In this document: positions 22,681 to 52,200 of the stretch, in pieces
Layout: each line of letters begins with the position of its first letter
Position numbering within the stretch: the first letter of the stretch is position 1
Assembly: GCA_965202585.1 (NCBI GenBank)
Contig: OZ241828.1
Span: 53,630,001-53,694,000 of the forward strand
DNA from: Thalia democratica
Lineage: Eukaryota
Direction: 5' to 3'
Length of the DNA stretch: 64,000 bases
Notes under the pieces: model-generated
Databases searched by the model: none
The model's input: only the letters and a program-made list of their open reading frames with translations
Told to the model about the DNA's origin: nothing
Program-made: the position numbers and the translations under genes

Positions 22681-25600
22681 GTATGTATAAAATTTCAAAA
22701 AAAGGTAAGTAGTATGAACATAGCATTTTATCTTAAGGTTTGTATTGTGAAAAGAAATAAAATCATTTAAGGCTTTAAGTTAATATATTCGAAAAGATCC
22801 TTAAAAAACAAAACTGTAATTTTTTAGTTTTTTAAATAAACGTTTATGTCTGTGTGTAAAATAACTTTACAAGGCAGTCAAACAATATGGATCAAATGAT
22901 AGCAAACAATAAAACAAGTTGTGATTTTATCATTCTTAAAGTGTTTTTGATAGGAGCAAAAGCGGCATTTTCATATTACAAGAAAACAGACGACTTTCGC
23001 TTAATCAAACAACTTTTCTGGGCAGAGTCTCGACAGCGCCGCGCAGTGGCAACTTTCTACCCAAGCGTGACGTTCTGAATGCAAGAGAACCAGTTCAGTG
23101 GAGGAAGAAATGCGGCAGGAAAAAAAAAGAAAACTGCCGGCTTCAGTCGTGCACTCGACTCATTATTTTTACAGCGCAACTTAAGTGAAAGCGAGATAGC
23201 AGTGTTCATCTTGTAAACAATTGCTTTTTTTTAGTTGTAGTTTATCTTTGTTTTTGTGCATTGAAGTTGATTTGAAAATATAAAAACCAATTCGTTCCAG
23301 CTTTTAGTTTACCACAGTTTAGCTTAAAAGTTAGTCAAGTTAGTGTTTGGTTTGCTTTGCTTTTAGGATAACCCCGCACTCGTAGACACATGTGTTTATA
23401 CTAGGATTAACACCTCAATTGTTGCAAGACTTCTGGGTACCTATTAGAAGCAATTGAAACCGGTATCTAGCACGTTGCAGTGTATTTCAAACGTATTCGG
23501 GATTAGCGTTGCGATTGAGTTCTACGCAACCGTAAACAATTTGAATAACTTAGTCTTAATGTTCATACTTCGATGTGCTTTCGGTTAAGCTTTAATTTCA
23601 GAGATTCAAAAATATTTTGAAGAAAAAAGTTAAAAGTCCAGTTTGTATACATAACAACTTGTGTTGAATTTTGTGCTAATTTGTTTTGCCTAGGCTTGAA
23701 TGAGAATCGCATTCATTTAGCAACAATTACAAGCTAACTTGACATTGAAATTTAAAAGTTTTTGGAAATACTTAATAATTCATTATTAATTAGATTATGA
23801 ACTGTGTTGTCCATTCAAAAGCTATGTGTGGTGAAATTTAATAATTAGTTATGGTTTACTAAAGTATTCATATTTGTTTACTGAAAAAGTTTTGTTTTAA
23901 ATTGAACTATGTTTTATTAAAAAAAATTACAATAAAAAGTTCTTCAACAAGTTTTATAAAAAACCAAAAAAAATCTTAAAGTGACAAACTTTTTGTGTAT
24001 GAGTTGCTTTTCAAAAGGTTAAGCAGTTTTGATGTTTACAAACACACACAAGTTGCTCAGCAATTTTCCTTCTTGTTTTAGTATGACAAGCAACATAAAT
24101 TATTATTGCTGACAGATGTGAAACGTACACTTAGCTCCTTACTGCAACATGCTTTAGTCTTGCACTTATGTTGCTTTTGTTGACACCAATTCGTTTGTTT
24201 ACTGTAAAGCAAACTACAATTTGTTCTTATTATACCTGGATGCCTTGTCACCACTGTAATGAGCACAGCCTAAATTTAATTTAAGTTAGATTGACCTCTC
24301 ATAATTGGTGTGAGCTTACTTGGTGGTCATTTATTTTTTAATAAAGTGTTTTATGTAACAAACTTTACTTCAGCTTGTAACAGTAACATTTCTACATTTT
24401 ACAGAGTGTTAAATAATGTTTTAAAGTATTCTAACTGTTCAAACAACTAACAAAAAATAACTTTCTTTGTATGAAGTTTAATGAGGAAAACACAGAACAG
24501 TTATATCAGTTTTGAAAAGCAAAGAGCAAGAGACAAATTGAAAAGTTTGTGCTTTATTAATGTGGAAACTATGAATTACAAAATGTTAACACACAAATGG
24601 TCAAAATCCAGCAGTTGGTTACCAAGCAACGTCATAATATTACTTCTACTACTTGTAAACTGTAAGTTTCTGTTATTATCTGAATAAAATAAGCATATTT
24701 TATTTAAATTGTTTAGAAATACTTTAAGTTAAGTGGTTTCATAACAATAACAATGAAGTTTATATATATGGTACTTTGAAATAATCTGTTTTTACAAACT
24801 TATGCAAAATTTCATTTTTAAAAGTTGCTTAATAAACTTTAATAGTAATTAAAGTTATGATAAATATTTTTTGATTATGTTATCAAAAAAGAAGCTAAGT
24901 TGTAGACATGCTAGCTTTAAAGTAAAGTAAAGTTTATGCCAAAAAACTCATTGTAAAATTTACAAAAAGTCAATAAAACATACTTTAGGCAGCAAGTGCT
25001 GGCAAAAGTTATTTTGTAAATATTTAATGCTCATATTTTTAATTTGAACTTTCATCTGCTTTCTGTCAAAACTTAAGTAACTATTACATTAATATAATTA
25101 AAAAAGCTCTCAACTTGTAAGGACTGAAACTAATTTGTCAAATAAAAATTTTGTTGCTTGATGTTTTTAATACTGTAAGTAGTATGAAGTTATTTTATTT
25201 ATGAAATTGCCAATAGAGAATTATAGCTCTTTAAAATTATTTATTTTTTTGTTTCAAACAAAGAAAACTGCAAACAAAAACTGTTACATTATGAGCTACA
25301 CTTTTTTTTTGCCACAGTTTATTTCTCAAAACAACTGTTAGTCACTGGCTTTCCAACCTGTGAAAACAGTTTAGCATTTACTTCTGCAGCTGAGAGGGTT
25401 GCGCTGCTAGTTTGTTTACGCTGTCAAATTTTCATAAACAAGCCAGTCGAATAAAATTAAAAAGCGTTTGTATGTTTACCCTTTCCGCCGAAAGTGTTTA
25501 AAGTTTATTTGAAAGTTCTTTTGTGAGTTTCAAACAAAAAAGTTTGCTTTTCGTTCAAAGCTCACTGATAGCGGTAAACTGTATGTTTATGAGAGTGCGA

Positions 25601-39500: not shown

Positions 39501-42500
39501 AATCTCGTGTTGACAAAACATTTTCGGCTTTTATCTTATCGAGCAACGTGAAAAAGTTGAAGTGCTTTGCTGATAAAGATGTTTGGTATGAAAATGCGAC
39601 TTAATTTTATGAGATACACTGCTACCGTAAACTAACTTGTTTGTGCGAAAACACGACTTCAATTATTACGCAATGTATACTTTTTCTGTTATTTTCCTAC
39701 CTTGTCTTTTGCTTTTTACAAAAAAGCAATTTCAAAAAAATACTTTGTAAAAAAATAATCTGCGAAGAAAAACAAACCGTAAAAACAAACAAAAAATACA
39801 CTGTTTAAAAGCTTTTATCTGTTTCGAGACGTTACAAGTACATATGTCTCTGTTCGGGTGTTAAACAAACACTATTATTTGTTGTTTTTAACATTAAAAC
39901 CCAAGACAAAGTTTAACTTCAGTTTTCTTAGCAGCAAAACTTTTATTGAGTAATAGTAAAAGTTTTCGATACAAACCCGTTAAACTCTGTATGAATTGTT
40001 TTCTACTGCAAAAGTGGATATTTTAAACAACAACATCAAAATAAACAAAGAGCGTTTGTAGAGAAAAGTAAAACAGGGGCATACTAAAAAATTAAATTCA
40101 TGGTTGTTAGGAGCTCCGATCAAAGATAATGTGATATTTTGATTTGTTTGTTTGATTATAAAATATGTAGGATACTGAATTTTATACGCTTAATGTTTGG
40201 CACCAAACTCTGAAGTCGCTTGTATGTTTTCCAAAAGCGAAAATATTTTTCTGAAGAGAGCACCATGCCGCTGAAGCAATTACGTCAATAAACATCGAGG
40301 ATTCAGTTTCAGGACGCTTGCGATAAAGTTTCGCACAAGCTGAAACGGTTTGAATAGTTTCAAGACTTTCTAGAAAAAAAAAATTGGCAGCCTTGTACAC
40401 ACTATGATCAATAATCGAGTTTAATCGAGTTTTAATTGCAATCACTCTTGTAATGTCTTATCAGAAAAACGCTCTAAATTGATTTGGCTACCGCACCACG
40501 TCACAGAACATGCCACTGACGTTTGCTTGGCACATCCGCTGAAAATGATTCTATACCGGGCTTGTCCAATCGAATTATCGCAGCGCTTATCTATCAGCGA
40601 TCCTTTCTATTGATTATTTGTGTGTGTTTGCGCGCGAATCGAACAAAACTGCAAGGATTTTGAGGTTTTAATTTAGCACGGCTCCTTGAGTTTGTTTTCG
40701 TCTGGAAAGTGAAACGAGTTTAAATTTGAAAAACTTCATTCAAACAGACAGCTGTTCACAACTGAGTGCTGCAGACTTTTTGGGCGACACTTAAAAGTGC
40801 TTGAGACTTTGGCTTTTCCCGTTTCTAAACTTTCCCGTTTTTTTCAGGATTGACAGGAACGACCTGAGCATCGAGGAGTCGCACAACACTCCTTACGACA
40901 AGATGGCAGCTCTGAACGCGTTCATGGCCTGCGGGGTCATGTATGTGGTGAATGGGACTTCCCTGAAAATCGACTACATGTACAACACCACCACTTCGCA
41001 AGGAAAAAGGGTGAGTTTTAGATATACATACACATTTTTAGATATTTTTTTGTGTTTAGTGTTTTATTTATTTTCAATAAAATGTTTGTCTCAAGGTGTT
41101 AAGTAAATAAATTATTTACTATCACATGCTACAAACAGGTGAACATCGACGTTCCTGGTGTTTTAAACACGACAACGTCCATCAAGTACAGCTACTACAA
41201 CCACCAGTTGTACGTGTTTGAAAGCAACGGCTACGCCACCCTCTACCAAGTCAACTACAACCACAACGAAGACGACACACCAACCATAACAACCAGCACT
41301 CAAGCGAAACCCGATCCGACCCGAAACCCAATAAAAACATCCACTAAACTTGGTTAGTTATACTAAAAACTTTCAAAGTAAAAACATAATGCGTAATCCA
41401 TGGAATAACCTTATATTTTTGAGCACAAGCGCTAATTTAAACAAAGTTTGCTTTAAAAGTTCAAATTCGAGTAAAAGCCTTCTCAAATGTGTTGTTTCAC
41501 AACAATCGCCAGAGCAAACACGGCAGGTCGACCAATTCGCTCTCCATCATTCTACAAACCGTTTGTTCCTCAAGTGCCCGCGACCCTTCCTCCCTAATTC
41601 ACGGCAAACAAAGCAGGGTATTATGACGTCACAATTAGCCGCTGATTAGCCATCGCACTCGAGTGTATTCTTGTCGCGCCGTTCTTTTTTATGTTTTCCT
41701 AATGCTCGCTCTCTCAGCTGTGTTGCCGACCCGCACACGGGCCAGCCACCCCAGTTTTCGGAAAAATCCTTGAAAACTTGGCAGTTTTGTCGACTTTTCG
41801 CCAAAATGCGTATTGGCGGTACTTGAGAAACGAGCGGTAATTTTTCAAGTTTAAAAGCGCTTTTGTGTGCTTTTTGACATGAAATAAAAAAACGTTGTGC
41901 GAAAAGTTTGACTTTTTATACATGTTAAGCGAAAACTTTAGGTGAACTTAGTCCCATGAGATTGATGCTACGGAAATGTATAGATTTTTATAAAATGTTA
42001 AATAAAGTTTTTGTTTATAGTTTAAGCTTAATCCCCCCTGAACAAAAAAACATACGAGTTTAAACATTTTTAAAATATACTTTGTTCTTTGTTTTTTTGT
42101 GATAAAAAAGGACTTTAAACTAATATTGCAGGATGTGCTTAAAACGCTGTCTTAATTTGAATTTAATACCTGTCTATTTTATTACAGTAAGTTATTAAAG
42201 TTAATTGCCGCGTTTTGGCTAGGCTTGAAATAAAAAAAAATTGAAAATTGTTAAAAATAGTTATATATATAAAACATAAAAACACTCTTTACTTAATAAC
42301 TTACATTACATTTTTTTATTTTTGAAATTGGCTTAACAACTTAATATAATTTATTTACTTATAGATATTGAACATCCTTTGTATTGCAAACCTGTGAGCT
42401 CACAAGGATTTGAATGGGAGAGAGTTGAGACCGGCCAGTCTGCGACGGTTGCTTGTCCAGGTAAAAAATTGAAGAATTGTAAATTTATTAAAAAAAAAAA

Positions 42501-45500: not shown

Positions 45501-48500
45501 AATTCAATAATTCATTTTTTTAACAGAACCCTAAACGGAATATGGTCACCAAAAGGGTGCGCCACGGAGAAGCATCAAGACGGCAGCGTGACGTGTACTT
45601 GCGACCACGCCACCGCCTTCGCTGTTCTCACGTCCAACGACGGGGAGTTCCCGCTGTCGTGGCAACAGAAAATGAGCACCGTAGACCCAACTCCGGGATT
45701 TCCCCCGACCTCGGACGGCCAAACAGAAACAGATGAGGTTGAAGTAGAAGAAGTTCAGTTTGAGGGTTTGTCGATTATCAGAGTGGGTTTGGTGTTTTCA
45801 ATACTGATCCAAATGGTTGTTCTCGTCACCCTACTATTTTACAGGTTTATACAATAGTATTTTTGCAAAAAAAAAATAAAAAGTGTGATAACTTGCTAGT
45901 ATTAAAACCTTTAATCCAATTTTTTCGACCAAAAACACTTAGGTTAATTAACTCTTTGAAAACTAACAGCCACAAACTGGATTCCAACACGATCCACAAA
46001 AACATCGTCGTCTGTTCGCTCGTCACCGGCATTTTGTTCGCGTTTTTCGTCAACCAGACTTCAAACAACCAGTGGTGCTCCATGGTCAGTGTCCTGCTCC
46101 ACATTGGCATTTTGTCTTCGGCCTGCTGGTCCACTCTGTCCTGCTACCACCTCATGTCGGACCAGGGCGAGAACAAGCGGTACAAAACGTACTACTTTGT
46201 CGGCTACGGTGCCCCCGTTTTGTGCGTGGTCATAACAGCAGCCATCGACAAGAGCGTTTATGATGGAAAGAAGATGTAAGTGTTTTGTTTCCTATTCTTA
46301 AAGTATTATAATTTAATGCATAAAAATTAAACGTGACAAATACTTTTAAACTTCTCTTACGGTAAACGTGATACAATAATTGCATTATACTCATTTACAT
46401 TAACTAACATTAACGCTACAGGTGTTGGGTCGACCCTGGTACAAGCTCAATTTACGGAGTTGTTGTACCGTTGCTGGTGGCCGTGGTCATTTCTGTTTGT
46501 TGCGTTGTGGTCGTTTTGAAAAACTTGAAGTCTCCCATGTCTTCTGCGAGGACTGCTCTCACGCACAAGCGTAAATCAATCAGGTTAGAACATTAAGTTT
46601 GTTGTTGCAATTAATAGGTCTTTTGATAAAATGTTTTTTTTTTACAAAATGTGTGTTTAAGGTAGACATATAAAAAACTAACAAATGTGAAAATTACCTG
46701 ATATATTCTGTCATGATAAACGAAAAAACTTTGTCTTTAGAAAAATGACCCAGCAAACCTGCTTCATATACGCATTGATGGCAGCGAAGTGGAGCTCATT
46801 GATACCTTGGATGTCGACCAACAGCAGCCAGATTGTGACCGCCTGGCTCTTCTGCATATTCACCATCATCTACTCGCTCGCCTGCCTGGTCTGCTTCTGC
46901 ATACTCGATGAAAAAGTTTGTTTGAAATTCTAAATTTTTTTAATTGTTCACACAGCTTCATATTGAATTTGATAAAAAAAAAAAAAAGAAAGTTAAACTC
47001 AGTTGCTTATTGTAACAAAATTTAACTTTATTTTTTCTTCAGGTCAGAAGCAAATGCTGCAAATGGCTGCACAACATCAAAAAAGACCAGGACTTTAACC
47101 GCAGGCACCACCACCACCCTGTGGGACCGGACGGAAGGCGGAGACCGTTCGGAGCTACCGACAGTCAGATCAACCCGAACAGCGGCTACCCGCTCCACGC
47201 CGTGAGAACGACAATGCAATCAAACACGTCGAACGGGTATCCGGTAAACGCTAGCAGCGAATCGCCTACCGGTGAGTATTGTTGGAAAAACTTTGATATT
47301 AGTCTCTTTTTGTCTGTTTCGATTGTTTTTTTCTAACTTAAAAAAATTATTAGATTTACTTGAAAACTGACCAAATATTTTTTTTAGATTACCGACAGCC
47401 CTTGTCGTCTACTTCCACCCACGTGGCTCCGAGGACGCACTACGGCGACGAGATCACGCGGCCGCTCATGCAGCTTGCCCCTTCTAGCTGCTCGTCCCTC
47501 CAGCACTGCGACCTCATCGCCAGTTGCCACGGCATCCACGGCTCCACCGCGGCCCCCTGCTGCCACGGCAACTGCCAGCGCGGCCTCGAGGGCAAGTTTC
47601 ACCAGCAGCAGAGGTACTCGACCAACAACGCGAACAGCTGGAACAACTACGTGCAGAGCGGACCGATCGGGCACCGCACCACCATCGCCACCAGCAGCGG
47701 CGGGAAGCAGGTCCAAGTCACCCTGCCCTCGCCGAGCTGCAGCCACTGCCGCGCGAACGACATGCAGGGTGGTTCCCCTCACTACTACGAGCAGCCGCGC
47801 AACCCCACTTCCACGGTCCCCATGTGCTCGTACCAGCCGAAGATCGCCTCCCCGACCAGCACCGTGACCAGCGTCCACCCGTACGACCACCTGCACCAGC
47901 AGGACAGGTTCGCGCCCCAGCCGAGGCAGCAGAGGTGCAGGTGCGGGCCGTTGCATATGCAAAGTGCCAGCCCGCCGCACTCGACCTGTTCCACCATGAC
48001 GTCGTCGAAGCCGGGGCACTTGTACGAGACCCTCGGACCCTTCAGGTCCAATGACGAGACTTCGCCCGTTCAGCATCAGCCCGTGGACGACTCGGTCGGT
48101 CTGGACTTTCACCAGCAAGTCAGACGACAGGTGCTTTAGGTTCTAATTTTGTGTGTTTTTGCGTACATTAGTTTTGTATGATAATTTTGTTTTAAACAAA
48201 TATATTTCATAAAAGCAATAAAATTAAACAAATAAAGTGTTGCTCAATTCTTTTAACGTTTTTTAAATTTTTTTCTTGTTTCTTTTTACACAGGAGTTTT
48301 AAACTCAACCTCGTTGTTTACAGTCGCTGCAATACCAGAGTGCCAATTACCGGCCGGAACGCCAGAACATCGACTGTGACGTCATAACCAGGCACCCCTC
48401 GTCCCGCTTCCACTACTCCCAACACCGCACTCTGCCCGAGGACTCGCGCCACCCCATACTGGAAGAAGACCAGCTGCTGATGCGGGGCGACCCCCACAGG

Positions 48501-49205
48501 CACCACCCCTCTCGCGTCATGACGACCAGCTTCGGCCATGACAACCTCATGTCGCAGCACGCGTCCCGCGACGTTCTGCTGGCCGCCGGCCCATCCTTCC
48601 ACGGGCACCATCTGGGCGGCGGGGTGCGCCACGGAAACAAGTACGGCCAGCATCACCATGGAAACCACGTCCACCACCAGCAGCAGGGATCAGGTCGCAG
48701 CTCGGACCCGCTTTCGACCGACCAGGGCTACGACACCGACTCTTGCCAGCAGCTTCAGTTCGGTCGACACGCGGCGACGTCGTCTTCCAATCAGCAGCGG
48801 CGCAAGGAGAACGTCATTACGACGTCATCGGCCAACTCGTCGCGCACCACCGAAGACGACGAGTCGTCGGAGAACGACCTAGAAGTGGAGAAGATAAACC
48901 GCCACAACGAAGCGCTGCTGTCGCCCGCCGACTCCGAGTCAATGATCGAGACATCGAGGGGCGGCAGGCTGAGCGGCACGGACACAGTGACGTCGTGGGC
49001 CGCCGTGAAGCCGCCCAAGTCCAGCTCGCACCACCACTTTGAGGGAAACCACCACCAGGCGCACCAGAGGCACTCGCAGCACTTCTCACAGGGGGGAAGT
49101 TCCCAGCTTCCGAGCTCCTACACCCTCCCCGAGACGTCCGAGTCGGCCACCAAGGCGAAGATCGACCTGAGGGCGGGCGGAGTGAACATGATCACTAACC
49201 TGTGA
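30351..49205 (+). CDS. ADGRL: Latrophilin-like adhesion GPCR (lectin-OLF-HRM-GAIN/GPS-7TM-PDZ motif), 19 coding exons in this span; signal-peptide exon(s) upstream
   Basis: Manual splicing of 19 GT-AG exons gives an uninterrupted frame (5006 nt = 2 + 1668 codons). Translated motifs: 8-Cys SUEL lectin, GMWMKDP / [18 protein letters not shown] / NAFMACG (olfactomedin), CAFW..W...GC...CTCDH (GPS), seven hydrophobic helices with NTIHKN and CW, C-terminal ITNL. Confidence 0.95.
31827..31945 (+). CDS. ADGRL: Exon: C-half of SUEL lectin domain
   Basis: ctgcag / gtgagt; CDGNAYCKFEVSGSLFEDGNACFNTEGKFLNLVYECKPL; phase 2 to 1. Confidence 0.93.
33782..33797. repeat. Exact copy of the 16-bp near-palindrome ATTGTGACGTCATAAT (CRE core)
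   Basis: Identical to 49205-49220 and to the reverse complement of 41620-41635. Confidence 0.85.
36191..36329 (+). CDS. ADGRL: Exon: start of olfactomedin domain
   Basis: ttcaacag / gtaagc; EPCNEG...NPGMWMKDP; phase 1 to 2. Confidence 0.92.
37674..37842 (+). CDS. ADGRL: Exon: olfactomedin domain
   Basis: tttcacag / gttcgt; YIYFLQY...PDGTGMVVIGNDLYYNK; phase 2 to 0. Confidence 0.92.
38594..38796 (+). CDS. ADGRL: Exon: olfactomedin domain
   Basis: ttcaacag / gtgagt; [38 protein letters not shown]; phase 0 to 2. Confidence 0.95.
40848..41010 (+). CDS. ADGRL: Exon: olfactomedin domain
   Basis: ttttcag / gtgagt; TPYDKMAALNAFMACGVMYVV..IDYMYNT; phase 2 to 0. Confidence 0.95.
41139..41352 (+). 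CDS. ADGRL: Exon: end of olfactomedin domain and Thr-rich linker
   Basis: aaacag / gttagt; SIKYSYYNHQLYVFESNGYATLY..TPTITTST; phase 0 to 1. Confidence 0.93.
41620..41635. repeat. Exact copy (reverse orientation) of ATTGTGACGTCATAAT
   Basis: ATTATGACGTCACAAT read directly. Confidence 0.85.
42365..42460 (+). CDS. ADGRL: Exon: hormone-receptor motif (HRM), first half
   Basis: cttatag / gtaaaa; LYCKPVSSQGFEWERVETGQSATVACP; phase 1 to 1. Confidence 0.9.
43178..43311 (+). CDS. ADGRL: Exon: HRM, second half
   Basis: tttacag / gtaagt; GHATWKC..FSPEGANFEHCTSDWL; phase 1 to 0. Confidence 0.92.
43680..43791 (+). CDS. ADGRL: Exon: GAIN subdomain A
   Basis: tttttag / gtaagt; VTQESVVDKSRDLERQ..PWDVVATIDLLN; phase 0 to 1, required for frame continuity. 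Confidence 0.85.
44503..44636 (+). CDS. ADGRL: Exon: GAIN subdomain A
   Basis: tgtacag / gtgagg; NFVKIADVLLDENLEDKWDQL; phase 1 to 0. Confidence 0.92.
44949..45427 (+). CDS. ADGRL: Exon: GAIN subdomain B to first half of GPS
   Basis: gttctag / gtttgt; RIIEVMDRIG..VDSELISVS..VTIKF..SCAFWNVT; phase 0 to 2. Confidence 0.93.
45527..45844 (+). CDS. ADGRL: Exon: GPS, tethered-agonist (Stachel) segment, acidic linker, TM1
   Basis: ttaacag / gtttat; GIWSPKGC..TCTCDHATAFAVLT..LSIIRVGLVFSILIQMVVLVTLLFY; phase 2 to 2. Confidence 0.95.
45970..46275 (+). CDS. ADGRL: Exon: TM2-TM4
   Basis: ctaacag / gtaagt; NTIHKNIVV..WCSMVSVLLH..YYFVGYGAP..AAID; phase 2 to 2. Confidence 0.95.
46422..46583 (+). CDS. ADGRL: Exon: ECL2, TM5, ICL3
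   Basis: gctacag / gttaga; CWVDPGTSSIYGVVVPLLVAVVISVCCVVVVLK; phase 2 to 2. Confidence 0.93.
46741..46915 (+). CDS. ADGRL: Exon: TM6-TM7
   Basis: tctttag / gtttgt; FIYALMAAKWSSLIPW..VTAWLFCIFT..CFCILDEK; phase 2 to 0. Confidence 0.93.
47043..47271 (+). CDS. ADGRL: Exon: helix 8 and proximal cytoplasmic tail
   Basis: ttcttcag / gtgagt; VRSKCCKWLHN..RRHHHHP; phase 0 to 1. Confidence 0.92.
47388..48130 (+). CDS. ADGRL: Exon: cytoplasmic tail (Cys/His/Gln/Pro-rich)
   Basis: tttttag acceptor, long GC-rich open frame. Donor most likely CAG|gtgctt at 48130; AA|gtcaga at 48118 is an in-phase alternative. Confidence 0.88.
48324..49205 (+). CDS. ADGRL: Terminal coding exon: His-rich tail ending in class I PDZ-binding motif MITNL*
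   Basis: gtttacag acceptor, phase 0, 294 codons to TGA; the x-T-x-L terminus parallels the vertebrate latrophilin VTSL end. Confidence 0.9.
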   Translation, partial: SLQYQSANYRPERQNIDCDVITRHPSSRFHYSQHRTLPEDSRHPILEEDQLLMRGDPHRHHPSRVMTTSFGHDNLMSQHASRDVLLAAGPSFHGHHLGGGVRHGNKYGQHHHGNHVHHQQQGSGRSSDPLSTDQGYDTDSCQQLQFGRHAATSSSNQQRRKENVITTSSANSSRTTEDDESSENDLEVEKINRHNEALLSPADSESMIETSRGGRLSGTDTVTSWAAVKPPKSSSHHHFEGNHHQAHQRHSQHFSQGGSSQLPSSYTLPETSESATKAKIDLRAGGVNMITNL

Positions 49206-49220
49206 TTGTGACGTCATAAT
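49205..49220. repeat. Exact copy of ATTGTGACGTCATAAT overlapping the stop codon
   Basis: TGA(49203-49205) followed directly by TTGTGACGTCATAAT. Confidence 0.85.
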
Positions 49221-49271
49221 GAATTTTAAAAACTTGCACATCGCATTCCAAATTTCTCCTTTTTTGATTTC

Positions 49272-49277
49272 ATTAAA
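49272..49277 (+). terminator. Possible proximal polyadenylation signal (ATTAAA); a canonical AATAAA lies at 50975-50980
   Basis: Hexamer match downstream of the stop in T-rich sequence; weak evidence in an AT-rich genome. Confidence 0.25.
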
Positions 49278-52200
49278 AGGCCAATTTTTTCCTTGACTTT
49301 TGAATTTGAACAAAAATATTTACTACTTAATATGAAAATTTTCAACATATTCTACAGTTTATGTATATACATGACTTTTCTACACTTTTACTATACTTCA
49401 GTCGCGTATTTACTTAGAATTAAAAACTTAACGTTTTTACTTGATTTAAAACAATTTTCTAGTACTTTCTGCTTGTTTGTTAGCCTTTTTACAAATTAAA
49501 ACAATTTTTTCTAAGTTGTGTTAAAAACTGTGCTCAGGTAGCAACTCAAGGCACAAAACAAATCATCTTTTATTGGCTACTTTTTGTGCTTTTTAGTTTT
49601 AATTTCAAGTTTTTGACAAACTTTAAGTTTACCCGTCTAGTAATCATGATTTTTATTTTTATGGTGTAAGTTATTATTTTTCAAATTTTGTTTCTCCTTA
49701 GCGAAATTTTTTATATAATTTACACTTTTATACTTTCGTTTTGTTTTAAAAACAATTGAAAAAAAATTGACAAAAAACTTGAGTGGTTAATCTTATGTTA
49801 TGTAGTTTTTACTTGACAAGACAAGATTCATTTATTTTGTGTGAGCAAAAAAAGCTGAGAAAATCTATTGATTTTGTTAAAAATTGCTTATGCATTTACA
49901 AAAAGTCAGTGCTACTAACTGCGTTTTTTTAATTTAAAAGAAAAATTAAGTACAAAAACTTTTGTGAATTAAGCTCTCTCTTAAAATAACTTAGTAATTC
50001 ATATATATTTCCACATTGTCAGAAATTTAAACAAAACACTTATGAAAAGTCTAAGAGTACTTTATTAAAAAAATATAGTTTCATAAATTACATTTATCAA
50101 CCATGAATGTTTGAAGCCAATTGACATTTTATTTTAAGCTTTTTAAAGCGCTCTGTATTGATTTTTAACCTTCTGATAAGTCGAAAAATGAACCAGTTTT
50201 GTAAACTAATCATTCTTTTTAACTTTAAATGCGTCATGTTTTGATTAGAGGTAGTATAAGTTCATAAAGTTTTAGTTAAGTAAAACAAGCAACTAATGAT
50301 CTTTTAATATAAATAGTTCTAGCTATATTAAATGCTAAAATCTTAAAATTTTAAAGAAAATTTTTGCATAGTAAGATTTATTACTTTTTTATAAGTTTGT
50401 AAACATTTTCTTTATTAGTTTTAATTCTTTTTTTATTGCACTATAATTGCATAATTAACTTTATGAGGTGATATTAAGATTAATTTCAGGGTTAACTTTA
50501 AAATTACTTTATAACAACAACTTTACTTTTTCCACAAAGAAAATCATACATTATATTGAATCAAGTTGCAAAATTTAGTTTAAAAACCCAAAATTGTTAA
50601 ACAAGTTTAGCCTAAAGTTTTTCTACTGTTTAAACATAAAATTATATACACATATAAGTTGTTTGTTGTAGAACTCATAGTAATGAATTTATGAAATTGT
50701 AAACCTCAGAGCTACAGTAAGTAATTATTATGGTGAGGCATGTAAAATTTTAAGTTCTACATGATCTCGTTGTTTACCTAAAATACTACTTAAGTTTAAG
50801 TTTATTTTAGTTGCTGATATGTCTTTATTAGGCTTTTGTAGAAGTAAAAACAATTTTTATTTTCTCCGTCTGATTAACTAGTCGGTATTTAATGTTTATG
50901 CAAACACGTAAAAGTTAACTTTCGAAATAGTTTAGGTAGAGAGCTACTTTTACAAACAATTAATTTAGTTACAAAATAAACTAAAACGATATTAACCAGC
51001 TAAAGTACAAATTAAAACTCGTAATGCAAAAGTAACAGTAATAACGCGAATACAAAATAATTAGTTTTTATTTTTCATTTAAGAGAACAAAAAATCAATT
51101 TAAAAATTGTGAATATAAACTTGAAACTACTGTTTAGCTCTTGTAAAGTAATGAACTAGCTTTATAATCTTTTAACAAAATTAATTAGACACATAATGCA
51201 ATTAATCACGTGTAGATTTTGTTTATTTTATCTTGGTTGTAGTTAAAGTTCAAACTTAAATGTCAAACTATAAAAATTTTAGTTATTTTTACATAAAAAA
51301 AGCGCTAAGGTCGATTTACTTTTTCTAAACTGTTTTCTTATAAATATATTTTTGGCACAAACTTCAATCAAAGCTATATTAAAAACATATTACTAGCTAC
51401 ATTACACTTACTTTAACTGATTTAATATAATTTCAAAAACACTTAAGAAAACTTTAAACTGTTTACTACACTTTTAAGAAAAATCACAAGCGCTTGCCAA
51501 ATACCTCTCAGTAGCTAATCGTTTTCAGCTCTAATATGTTTTTATTCACAATAACTTAGCACCGAAAAACAAACACCCTTGATATAAAGCGCAAATAATA
51601 ACTATTTGTTTTCGGTAAAGCGCGCATAGCAAAAACAAAGTGTTGGCAGGAGATTAATGCTAAAAGCAGCGCGACGCAGGCGACCAGATCGAAACGAAAA
51701 CAACAGATTTGCTCTTCGGGGTCACGCGCCCCTTCAGCCCCCTCAGAAGACGAATATCCGCCGATGCTATCTGTTTTATTACCGGCAACAGATTGAGGAG
51801 ATTACCATGGAAAAGTCTTCGATCTGTAAAACCGTCGGAGCGCGCCGCACCCCAATGTTTGAGAAGTAAAGCGTTTTTGCCGAGAAAAACATTTTTGTTA
51901 TTGTTTTGGCTCTCGCCAGACTTTTTGTTTGGTAAACATCACGGACTGCTGGTCGCAAGCGCACTCAAACCAGCCTGCAATCAATCACCGCGAAAGCTCC
52001 CACCGTAGTGACCCTTGGTAATACGCTGAAATAAATCAAGCCCGCGTTACCTTCCTGCGAGATTAATCATGAAATTATTTGCGCTGTTTGTTTGCATGTG
52101 TTGCGTATTCGGCAGGTAATGATAATCAACGGTTTTGTAGCGAGCTAGTCGGTGAGCGCAGTAAAAGAATAGTTAAATTTGAAGATGCAATTTTGTTTGT

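Follow-up and report, generated by a model that had tools for sequence, protein, structure and literature searches.

The last intron of the latrophilin (ADGRL-like) gene in a 64,000-nucleotide (nt) stretch of the Thalia democratica genome (contig OZ241828.1, positions 53,630,001 to 53,694,000 of the forward strand; here called the window, with positions counted from its first letter) ends in two acceptor-like AG dinucleotides that lie 30 nt apart. The distal one, AG2 (48322-48323), is the acceptor in every transcript seen, and opens a frame of 293 amino acids (aa) that ends in ITNL, a putative PDZ-binding motif. The proximal one, AG1 (48292-48293, CAG^G, the caret marking the exon border), has never been observed in use and would add two codons and a stop (GAG TTT TAA, 48294-48302; residues EF). 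An earlier note, made from the sequence alone, had described this anatomy, which can be read directly from the DNA, and had taken the pair for an on/off switch of the PDZ tail. What is found is a conserved AG that resembles an acceptor and precedes the one in use; a switch as such has no support from RNA. The reading favored here, with a probability of about 0.5, is that AG2 is the default acceptor and that AG1 is bypassed, with no working switch in bulk tissue.

The use of AG2 was followed in contigs, rather than raw reads, from four RNA or DNA runs placed on positions 46300-49400. Two of these runs (X1 and X2) come from one marine metatranscriptome sample, X7 belongs to an organism A, and X5, made of DNA contigs, to an organism B; X7 is regarded as RNA-derived because its contigs skip all four introns. 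One long contig in each of X1, X2, and X7 skips 193 nt, corresponding to a joint from 48130 to 48324 (listed as 48126 to 48320 with a GT..AG cut at +4, which is equivalent). The depth of the bins flanking the intron equals the exon-only expectation (for X1, 146 x 60/104 = 84.2 against 84.3 reported, and likewise for X2 and X7), so that no contig, long or short, covers 48131-48319. At contig level, these three runs contain neither a joint to 48294 nor a retained intron, the depth over 48131-48319 being zero.

The same junction is found in three full-length, mRNA-derived proteins of two related species, obtained from JGI metatranscriptome contigs via cluster listings (P0145 and P0149, with 1709 aa each, and P0157, with 1737 aa), all of which read ...HQQVRRQ^SLQHQ.... 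The mRNA of P0157 (L014), which matches a genomic contig, L001, at 99.7-100%, is likewise joined at the distal acceptor, and a junction pattern that allowed a gap of either 0 or 30 nt returned a gap of 0 nt both in L014 and in L015, an mRNA contig from a near relative. In a scan of JGI metagenome contigs, a collection that does not include these mRNA records, this pattern had 0 hits. In this way, six transcript assemblies from at least three related species or strains all use AG2, with no AG1 joint and no RNA over the 30-nt segment, which goes against the tail switch proposed in the earlier note. No protein ending in RRQEF or RRQES appears in the related protein clusters, as far as their members were listed, and a protein search with the penultimate exon returned only genomic read-through open reading frames ending in RRQVL or RRQVHLGSNFVCFCVQ, none of them in EF or ES. 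Neither L014 nor L015 contains a second terminal exon, the mRNA mapping to one last exon at 48324-49697. Transcripts of the distal acceptor are present, and those of the proximal acceptor, which an alternative 3' splice site would also produce, are absent at contig level. AG2 gives the major form; a minor or tissue-specific use of AG1 could have been missed, because contigs of bulk samples drop rare variants.

The intron itself (48131-48323, 193 nt) follows the penultimate coding exon, 19 of 20 (47388-48130), which ends in phase 0 with ...VRRQ, is matched by L015 at 98.8%, and is covered by the RNA contigs of X1, X2, and X7. The 3' end of this exon is AGA CGA CAG (RRQ) at 48130, followed by GTGCTTTAG, with the donor GT at 48131-48132. 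This donor (CAG^GTGCTT, 48131-48136) is one of only two, among the 19 donors of the gene, that lack both an A at +4 and a G at +5. Right after it comes a GU-rich intronic element with the core UUUUGUGUGUUUUUG (48131-48170), conserved across lineages. Toward the other end of the intron, a strict yUnAy branch-point-like motif, TTAAC (48253-48257), lies 37 nt 5' of AG1 as a candidate branch point for it, and is followed by the long pyrimidine tract of AG1 (48258-48291), which contains the invariant core CTTGTTTCTT. Between both AGs lies TTTAAACTCAAC (48298-48309), the likely branch-point region of AG2, which includes the TAA, and then the short degenerate pyrimidine tract of AG2 (48310-48321). 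The latter holds 11/15 pyrimidines over 48305-48319 and tolerates substitutions between lineages.

The strength of both sites was compared using an acceptor log-odds matrix built from the 19 RNA-defined acceptors of the gene (positions -23 to +3, leave-one-out), a small sample. AG1 reaches 8.8 bits, above 16 of the 19 true acceptors and sixth among 936 intronic AGs (top 0.6%), while AG2, with 5.7 bits, is the median of the 19. The richer tract attributed to AG1 in the earlier note is confirmed by the pyrimidine count over the 30 nt upstream of each site (25/30 for AG1 vs 17/30 for AG2). Its description of AG2 as a weak site, on the other hand, only holds relative to AG1 and not by the standard of the gene itself. 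The presence of an upstream AG is common: in nine of the other 18 introns an AG is found within 45 nt of the used acceptor, and a tandem AG is therefore not unusual in itself. AG1 does stand out from chance in its conservation and in its quality; no other decoy within 80 nt of a used acceptor scores high.

Most acceptors of this gene have TTAAC, CTGAC, TTTAC, or TAAAC about 17-23 nt upstream, and TAAAC takes the place of the branch motif in the introns ending at 40847 and 46740. For the last intron, the sole conserved candidates at the usual spacing are TTAAAC and CTCAAC (48299-48309), inside the 30-nt segment, with candidate branch A residues 15-22 nt upstream of AG2. Two other introns of the gene carry comparable pairs of AGs. 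In the intron 45845-45969, the acceptor in use is CTAACAG^CC (exon start 45970), preceded at a distance of 27 nt by CACTTAG^G; TTAATTAAC separates the two. Either AG would leave the frame open, and L015 uses the distal one, skipping the other. In the intron 47272-47387, a CTAAC is followed by an AG 17 nt later, 34 nt upstream of the used acceptor; the RNA contigs all splice to the distal AG, and the decoy is not kept in L001.

The conservation of the intron was examined in genomic contigs of relatives from marine metagenomes, which, with the window, make up four lineages: the window, L005/6 (99% at the amino acid level), L013/16 (95%), and L001/2 (84%). The pattern CAG^GAG T(T/C)T TAA AC(T/A) CAAC ... 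ACAG^TC is kept in all four and includes AG1, the TAA, and AG2, as the earlier note had proposed to check. The tract core is likewise identical in the four lineages, and TTAAAC and CAAC are invariant. The 4-8 nt just upstream of the CAG of AG1 vary (ACACAG, CACACAG, CATGCAG, CTTCCAG) while CAG^GAG stays fixed. In the comparison of the window with L001, the final 55 nt of the intron agree at 44 positions, against 27, 20, 31, and 24 of 55 in four neighboring introns (36-52% aligned identity). A 14-nt block, CAGGAGTTTTAAAC, shows no difference at all, whereas neighboring introns at this distance keep about 36-56% identity. The first 40 nt differ from L001 by one indel and two or three substitutions; the GU-rich element hardly varies among the window, L003/4, L005/6, and L001/2, while neighboring introns diverge after approximately 10 nt. 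Since both ends of the last intron are conserved next to saturated neighbors, both are under constraint, an argument carried by the one deep comparison between the clade of the window and L001. The GU-rich element may act as an intronic enhancer for the poor GTGCTT donor.

Other parts of the intron are less stable. L005/6 reads GAG TCT TAA (residues ES), where the stop is kept and the added residues are not, and the TTAAC at 48253-48257 is kept in L005/6 and is not alignable in L001/2. The third protein end of the earlier note, produced by reading through the donor (GTG CTT TAG, with the stop at 48137-48139, giving ...RRQVL), is present in the sequence of the window as described, although it has zero contig depth and is not conserved: a 1-nt insertion in L001/2 turns it into a 13-aa extension (RRQVHLGSNFVCFCVQ). 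For organism B, two DNA contigs of X5 over 48183-48332 differ from the window at 4-6 places, whose letters are not listed.

A more distant orthologue, L007/8, has an intron at the same position and a tail ending in TTNL. AG1 is absent from it, the nearest AG on the 5' side of its acceptor being more than 100 nt away, so that both sites are conserved in the four lineages and not in L007/8. It does keep TCTAAACCCAAT, with its TAAAC..CAA motif, where the window has TTTAAACTCAAC. In L009 and L010, two further tunicate loci with an intron at a similar place, there is no AG-stop-AG arrangement. The possibility that AG1 is the ancestral acceptor, corresponding to the CACACAG acceptor of L007, was considered from a local look-alike and is given low weight, as TAAAC..CAA aligns better if the L007 acceptor is AG2 with a 6-nt indel.

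Taken together, the proposed mechanism would work as follows. Default splicing from CAG^GTGCTT to AG2 provides the conserved cytoplasmic tail ending in ITNL. The branch point of AG2, whose position we infer from motif and spacing, most likely lies in TTTAAAC/CTCAAC (48298-48309), with the branch A at 48301-48308, within the 30-nt segment. In branch-point scanning, the spliceosome takes the first AG after the branch point, passing over any AG that precedes the branch point or follows it by less than about 12-15 nt (PMC1431707). AG1, located 5-15 nt upstream of this putative branch point, would be skipped despite its fine tract. A branch point at 48301-48308 would make AG2 the only choice, hide AG1, explain the TAA, and fit the state of L007/8. 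The in-frame TAA would be kept as part of the branch-point motif and not as a stop codon, and AG1 itself probably as part of a cis-acting splicing sequence for the last intron, formed by the block around AG1 and by the GU-rich element that follows the poor donor. Splicing to AG1 would depend on another branch point (the TTAAC at 48253-48257), and the choice of isoform would then be a choice of branch point. The AG skipped in the same manner 27 nt upstream of the acceptor of the intron 45845-45969 is in support of this reading.

Several observations weigh against it. The bypass would not account for CAG^GAG and the tract core CTTGTTTCTT being invariant, and a change in the bases beside AG1 while CAG^GAG stays is the pattern expected from a real, used acceptor. 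AG1 outscores 16 of the 19 real acceptors and has a TTAAC of its own 37 nt upstream, while none of the A residues proposed as branch points within the 30-nt segment matches yUnAy strictly. Moreover, all the RNA evidence comes from contigs of bulk samples, in which minor isoforms are dropped.

A possible, although clearly less probable, explanation is that AG1 is a real conditional acceptor, similar to that of the Drosophila gene tra, blocked in most cells by a repressor bound to its tract; its release would give a protein of approximately 1418 aa ending in ...RRQEF, without the 293-aa tail and its PDZ motif. In a clade-wide form, which is just as tentative, the acceptor pair 30 nt apart in the single latrophilin gene would be set by the choice of branch point together with proteins on the tract and on the GU-rich element. 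A repressor of the PTB type would be a speculative candidate, suited by the conserved UCUU-containing core. The rank of AG1 in the top 0.6% of intronic AGs and the preservation of CAG^GAG, TAA, and tract core in four lineages with turnover of adjoining bases speak in favor of such a switch. So do the conserved intron end (44/55 vs 20-31/55 in neighbors) and 5' flank, common around regulated splice sites, and the precedents of tra (PMC5488161) and Lphn3 E31/E32 (PMC10830413). The stop of the AG1 form lies after the last junction, and its escape from nonsense-mediated decay, as put forward in the earlier note, follows the exon-junction rule; the 3' untranslated region (UTR) of this mRNA would nevertheless be approximately 900 nt longer, which may still destabilize it. 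Against a switch stands the absence of any transcript, contig, or protein with the AG1 junction in the six assemblies and the listed cluster members. L007/8, L009, and L010 have no equivalent AG and stop, and the two residues added are not conserved (EF vs ES). The conserved TAA is also more simply explained by the TAAAC branch-like motif, which L007/8 keeps without AG1.

If AG1 is not used to make protein, its conservation could still reflect a role as a decoy or recognition element, an unlikely explanation in which U2AF or U2 at the AG1 tract would aid or tune the removal of an intron with a poor donor, or in which a short-lived AG1 mRNA would lower receptor output. It would account for intron ends constrained far beyond those of the neighbors, for the donor without +4 A and +5 G, and for the lack of any AG1 product seen. 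Against it, L007/8 splices the homologous intron without AG1, and the intron has no stable or covarying fold. The view that AG1 is a functionless AG in a T-rich intron, a relic kept by luck, is improbable: upstream AGs are common in the gene and the conservation depends on one deep comparison, yet the identity of the 14-nt CAGGAGTTTTAAAC where neighbors have largely diverged, and the status of AG1 as the sole high-scoring decoy near a used acceptor, are difficult to reconcile with chance. Least probable of all, to the point of being negligible, is that intron retention switches the tail off by producing ...RRQVL; the poor donor and the conserved flanks would fit, whereas the contig depth is zero in three runs and neither the position of the stop nor the added peptide is conserved.

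Several structural explanations of the intron were also considered and rejected. A stable fold was looked for in the last intron, whose minimum free energy is no better than that of shuffled sequences (z = -0.09), with no covariation. An RNA structure hiding AG1 was rejected on the same grounds, the 7-bp stem over AG1 showing no covariation. The end of exon 19 at 48121-48128 (CAGACGAC) is complementary to 48323-48329 (GTCGCTG, which spans the G of AG2 and the start of the last exon); this pairing is kept in three lineages, but the bases are coding, there is one mismatch in L001, and a helix between exon end and exon start was discarded for lack of covariation. A mirtron or embedded RNA as the cause of the conserved flanks was dropped as the intron ends do not pair, and recursive or two-step splicing via AG1 was rejected from the sequence, as no donor is regenerated at the AG1 junction. 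Searching Rfam with 47900-48600 gave only a chance match far below threshold.

The gene to which this intron belongs was laid out from L015, which aligns with the window at 95-99% identity in 20 blocks over 24409-49697. This gives 20 exons, 19 GT-AG introns, and a coding sequence of approximately 1709 aa, with the first mapped exon at 24409-24661 (plus strand, as are all the features described) followed by a first intron of 5.7 kb. OLF and GPS domains are found on exons of the window gene, and P0145 and P0157 contain SUEL_Lectin (weak), OLF, GAIN (weak), GPS, and 7tm_2. Given these domains and the mapping of L015 to the window, the gene has the domain set of a latrophilin and is a latrophilin (ADGRL-like) of a tunicate. 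Its closest named orthologues are ADGRL3-like proteins of the ascidians Clavelina, Ciona, Phallusia, and Styela. A search with residues 180-1250 of the Clavelina protein P0015 matched ascidian and vertebrate ADGRL proteins and no full-length protein from the clade of the window, those having come from the cluster listings. The gene is single copy in the 802-Mb genome, where paralogues were looked for and none was found, and the stretch or its close relatives occur in marine metatranscriptomes and in Tara metagenome contigs, which suggests a planktonic animal.

The coding part of the last exon (48324-49205) consists of 293 codons plus TGA (49203-49205), and is followed by a 3' UTR that reaches at least 49697 (49206-49697, at least 490 nt, from the L015 alignment). 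The frame ends in IDLRAGGVNMITNL (...MITNL, with the final CTG at 49200-49202). Conserved tunicate motifs of this tail include DPLSTDQGYDTDS, SEND.EVE, and TKA[KR]IDL, the last of them as a TKA[KR]IDL.(x)GG block kept before the C-terminus across tunicates. ITNL (49191-49202), identified by comparison with orthologues, matches the class-I pattern (x-S/T-x-hydrophobic-COOH) and is a putative PDZ-binding motif. The PDZ tail of the earlier note is thereby borne out as a conserved feature: tunicate orthologues end in [I/V/T]TNL and vertebrate proteins in L[V/I]TSL, with T at -2 and L at 0 common to both, and LVTSL, LITSL, or IITSL are the ends of 105 of 115 vertebrate ADGRL hits.

The more distant loci contain some further arrangements at the same place. 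The L007 intron has a GUGUGUUUG run approximately 27 nt in (L007:1609-1660), at an offset similar to that of the GU-rich element and beside a TGCATG. At the start of its last exon (L007:2085-2125), there are three AGs within 20 nt, the first and third of which are in frame and 15 nt apart with no stop between them. The last intron of L009 (L009:3830-3860) ends in GACAG CTTCTAAAATTTCAG^GG, with AGs 15 nt apart, in frame, and without a stop, possibly a five-codon tandem acceptor of another kind.

The two outcomes for AG1 would have different meanings. Should some cells splice to it, tunicates would have a means of turning the scaffold-binding tail of their latrophilin on and off, as vertebrates do with separate terminal exons. 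Such a switch would be a convergent and much more compact counterpart of the vertebrate E31/E32 system, would suggest that the need for a receptor without the tail is ancient or arose convergently, and would be small enough for minigene dissection. If AG1 is never used, this would be an acceptor of textbook quality bypassed through the position of the branch point, and a case in which ranking acceptors by pyrimidine tract in an AT-rich genome picks the wrong site. The unusually conserved flanks of the intron call for an explanation under either outcome.

Among known systems, the layout is closest to that of tra from Drosophila, where the proximal site has a U2AF tract approximately 100-fold better and leads to a stop, the weaker distal site gives the functional frame, and Sex-lethal decides between them by acting on the proximal tract (PMC5488161). 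Both genes have two acceptors in one intron, a proximal one with the better tract and a premature stop, and a distal one with a poorer tract and a long frame. In tra, both products have been observed and are under a known regulator, whereas transcripts of the tunicate gene show the distal form alone. The two tunicate sites are also separated by just 30 nt, and the premature stop would shorten the tail instead of abolishing the protein. The second precedent is mouse Adgrl3 (Lphn3), all transcripts of which terminate in either E31 or E32; scaffold recruitment and synapse formation depend on the PDZ-binding motif that E31 alone carries (PMC10830413). The earlier note had correctly named this toggling of the PDZ motif by alternative terminal exons in vertebrate ADGRL3. 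Both genes belong to one family and share T at -2 and L at 0 in the PDZ motif, whereas the vertebrate event involves separate terminal exons and is documented for RNA and function, and the tunicate gene has a single last exon and a hypothetical tandem acceptor. The tunicate intron accordingly departs from each of these systems in one defining point, namely the proximal-site RNA of tra, not seen here, and the mutually exclusive exons of E31/E32, in place of which it has one terminal exon.

The intron also resembles the NAGNAG tandem acceptors (PMC3250501), in having two in-frame AGs close together at one intron end that are conserved between species. In those, however, the AGs are 3 nt apart, share one branch point, and differ by one codon, while here they are separated by 30 nt, probably have separate branch points, and enclose a stop. 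As for AG exclusion by branch-point scanning (PMC1431707), this rule was set in mammalian systems, and the tunicate branch point is deduced from motif, spacing, and conservation; the likeness is that the acceptor in use is the first AG to follow a plausible branch motif, and that an AG upstream of the branch point is ignored.

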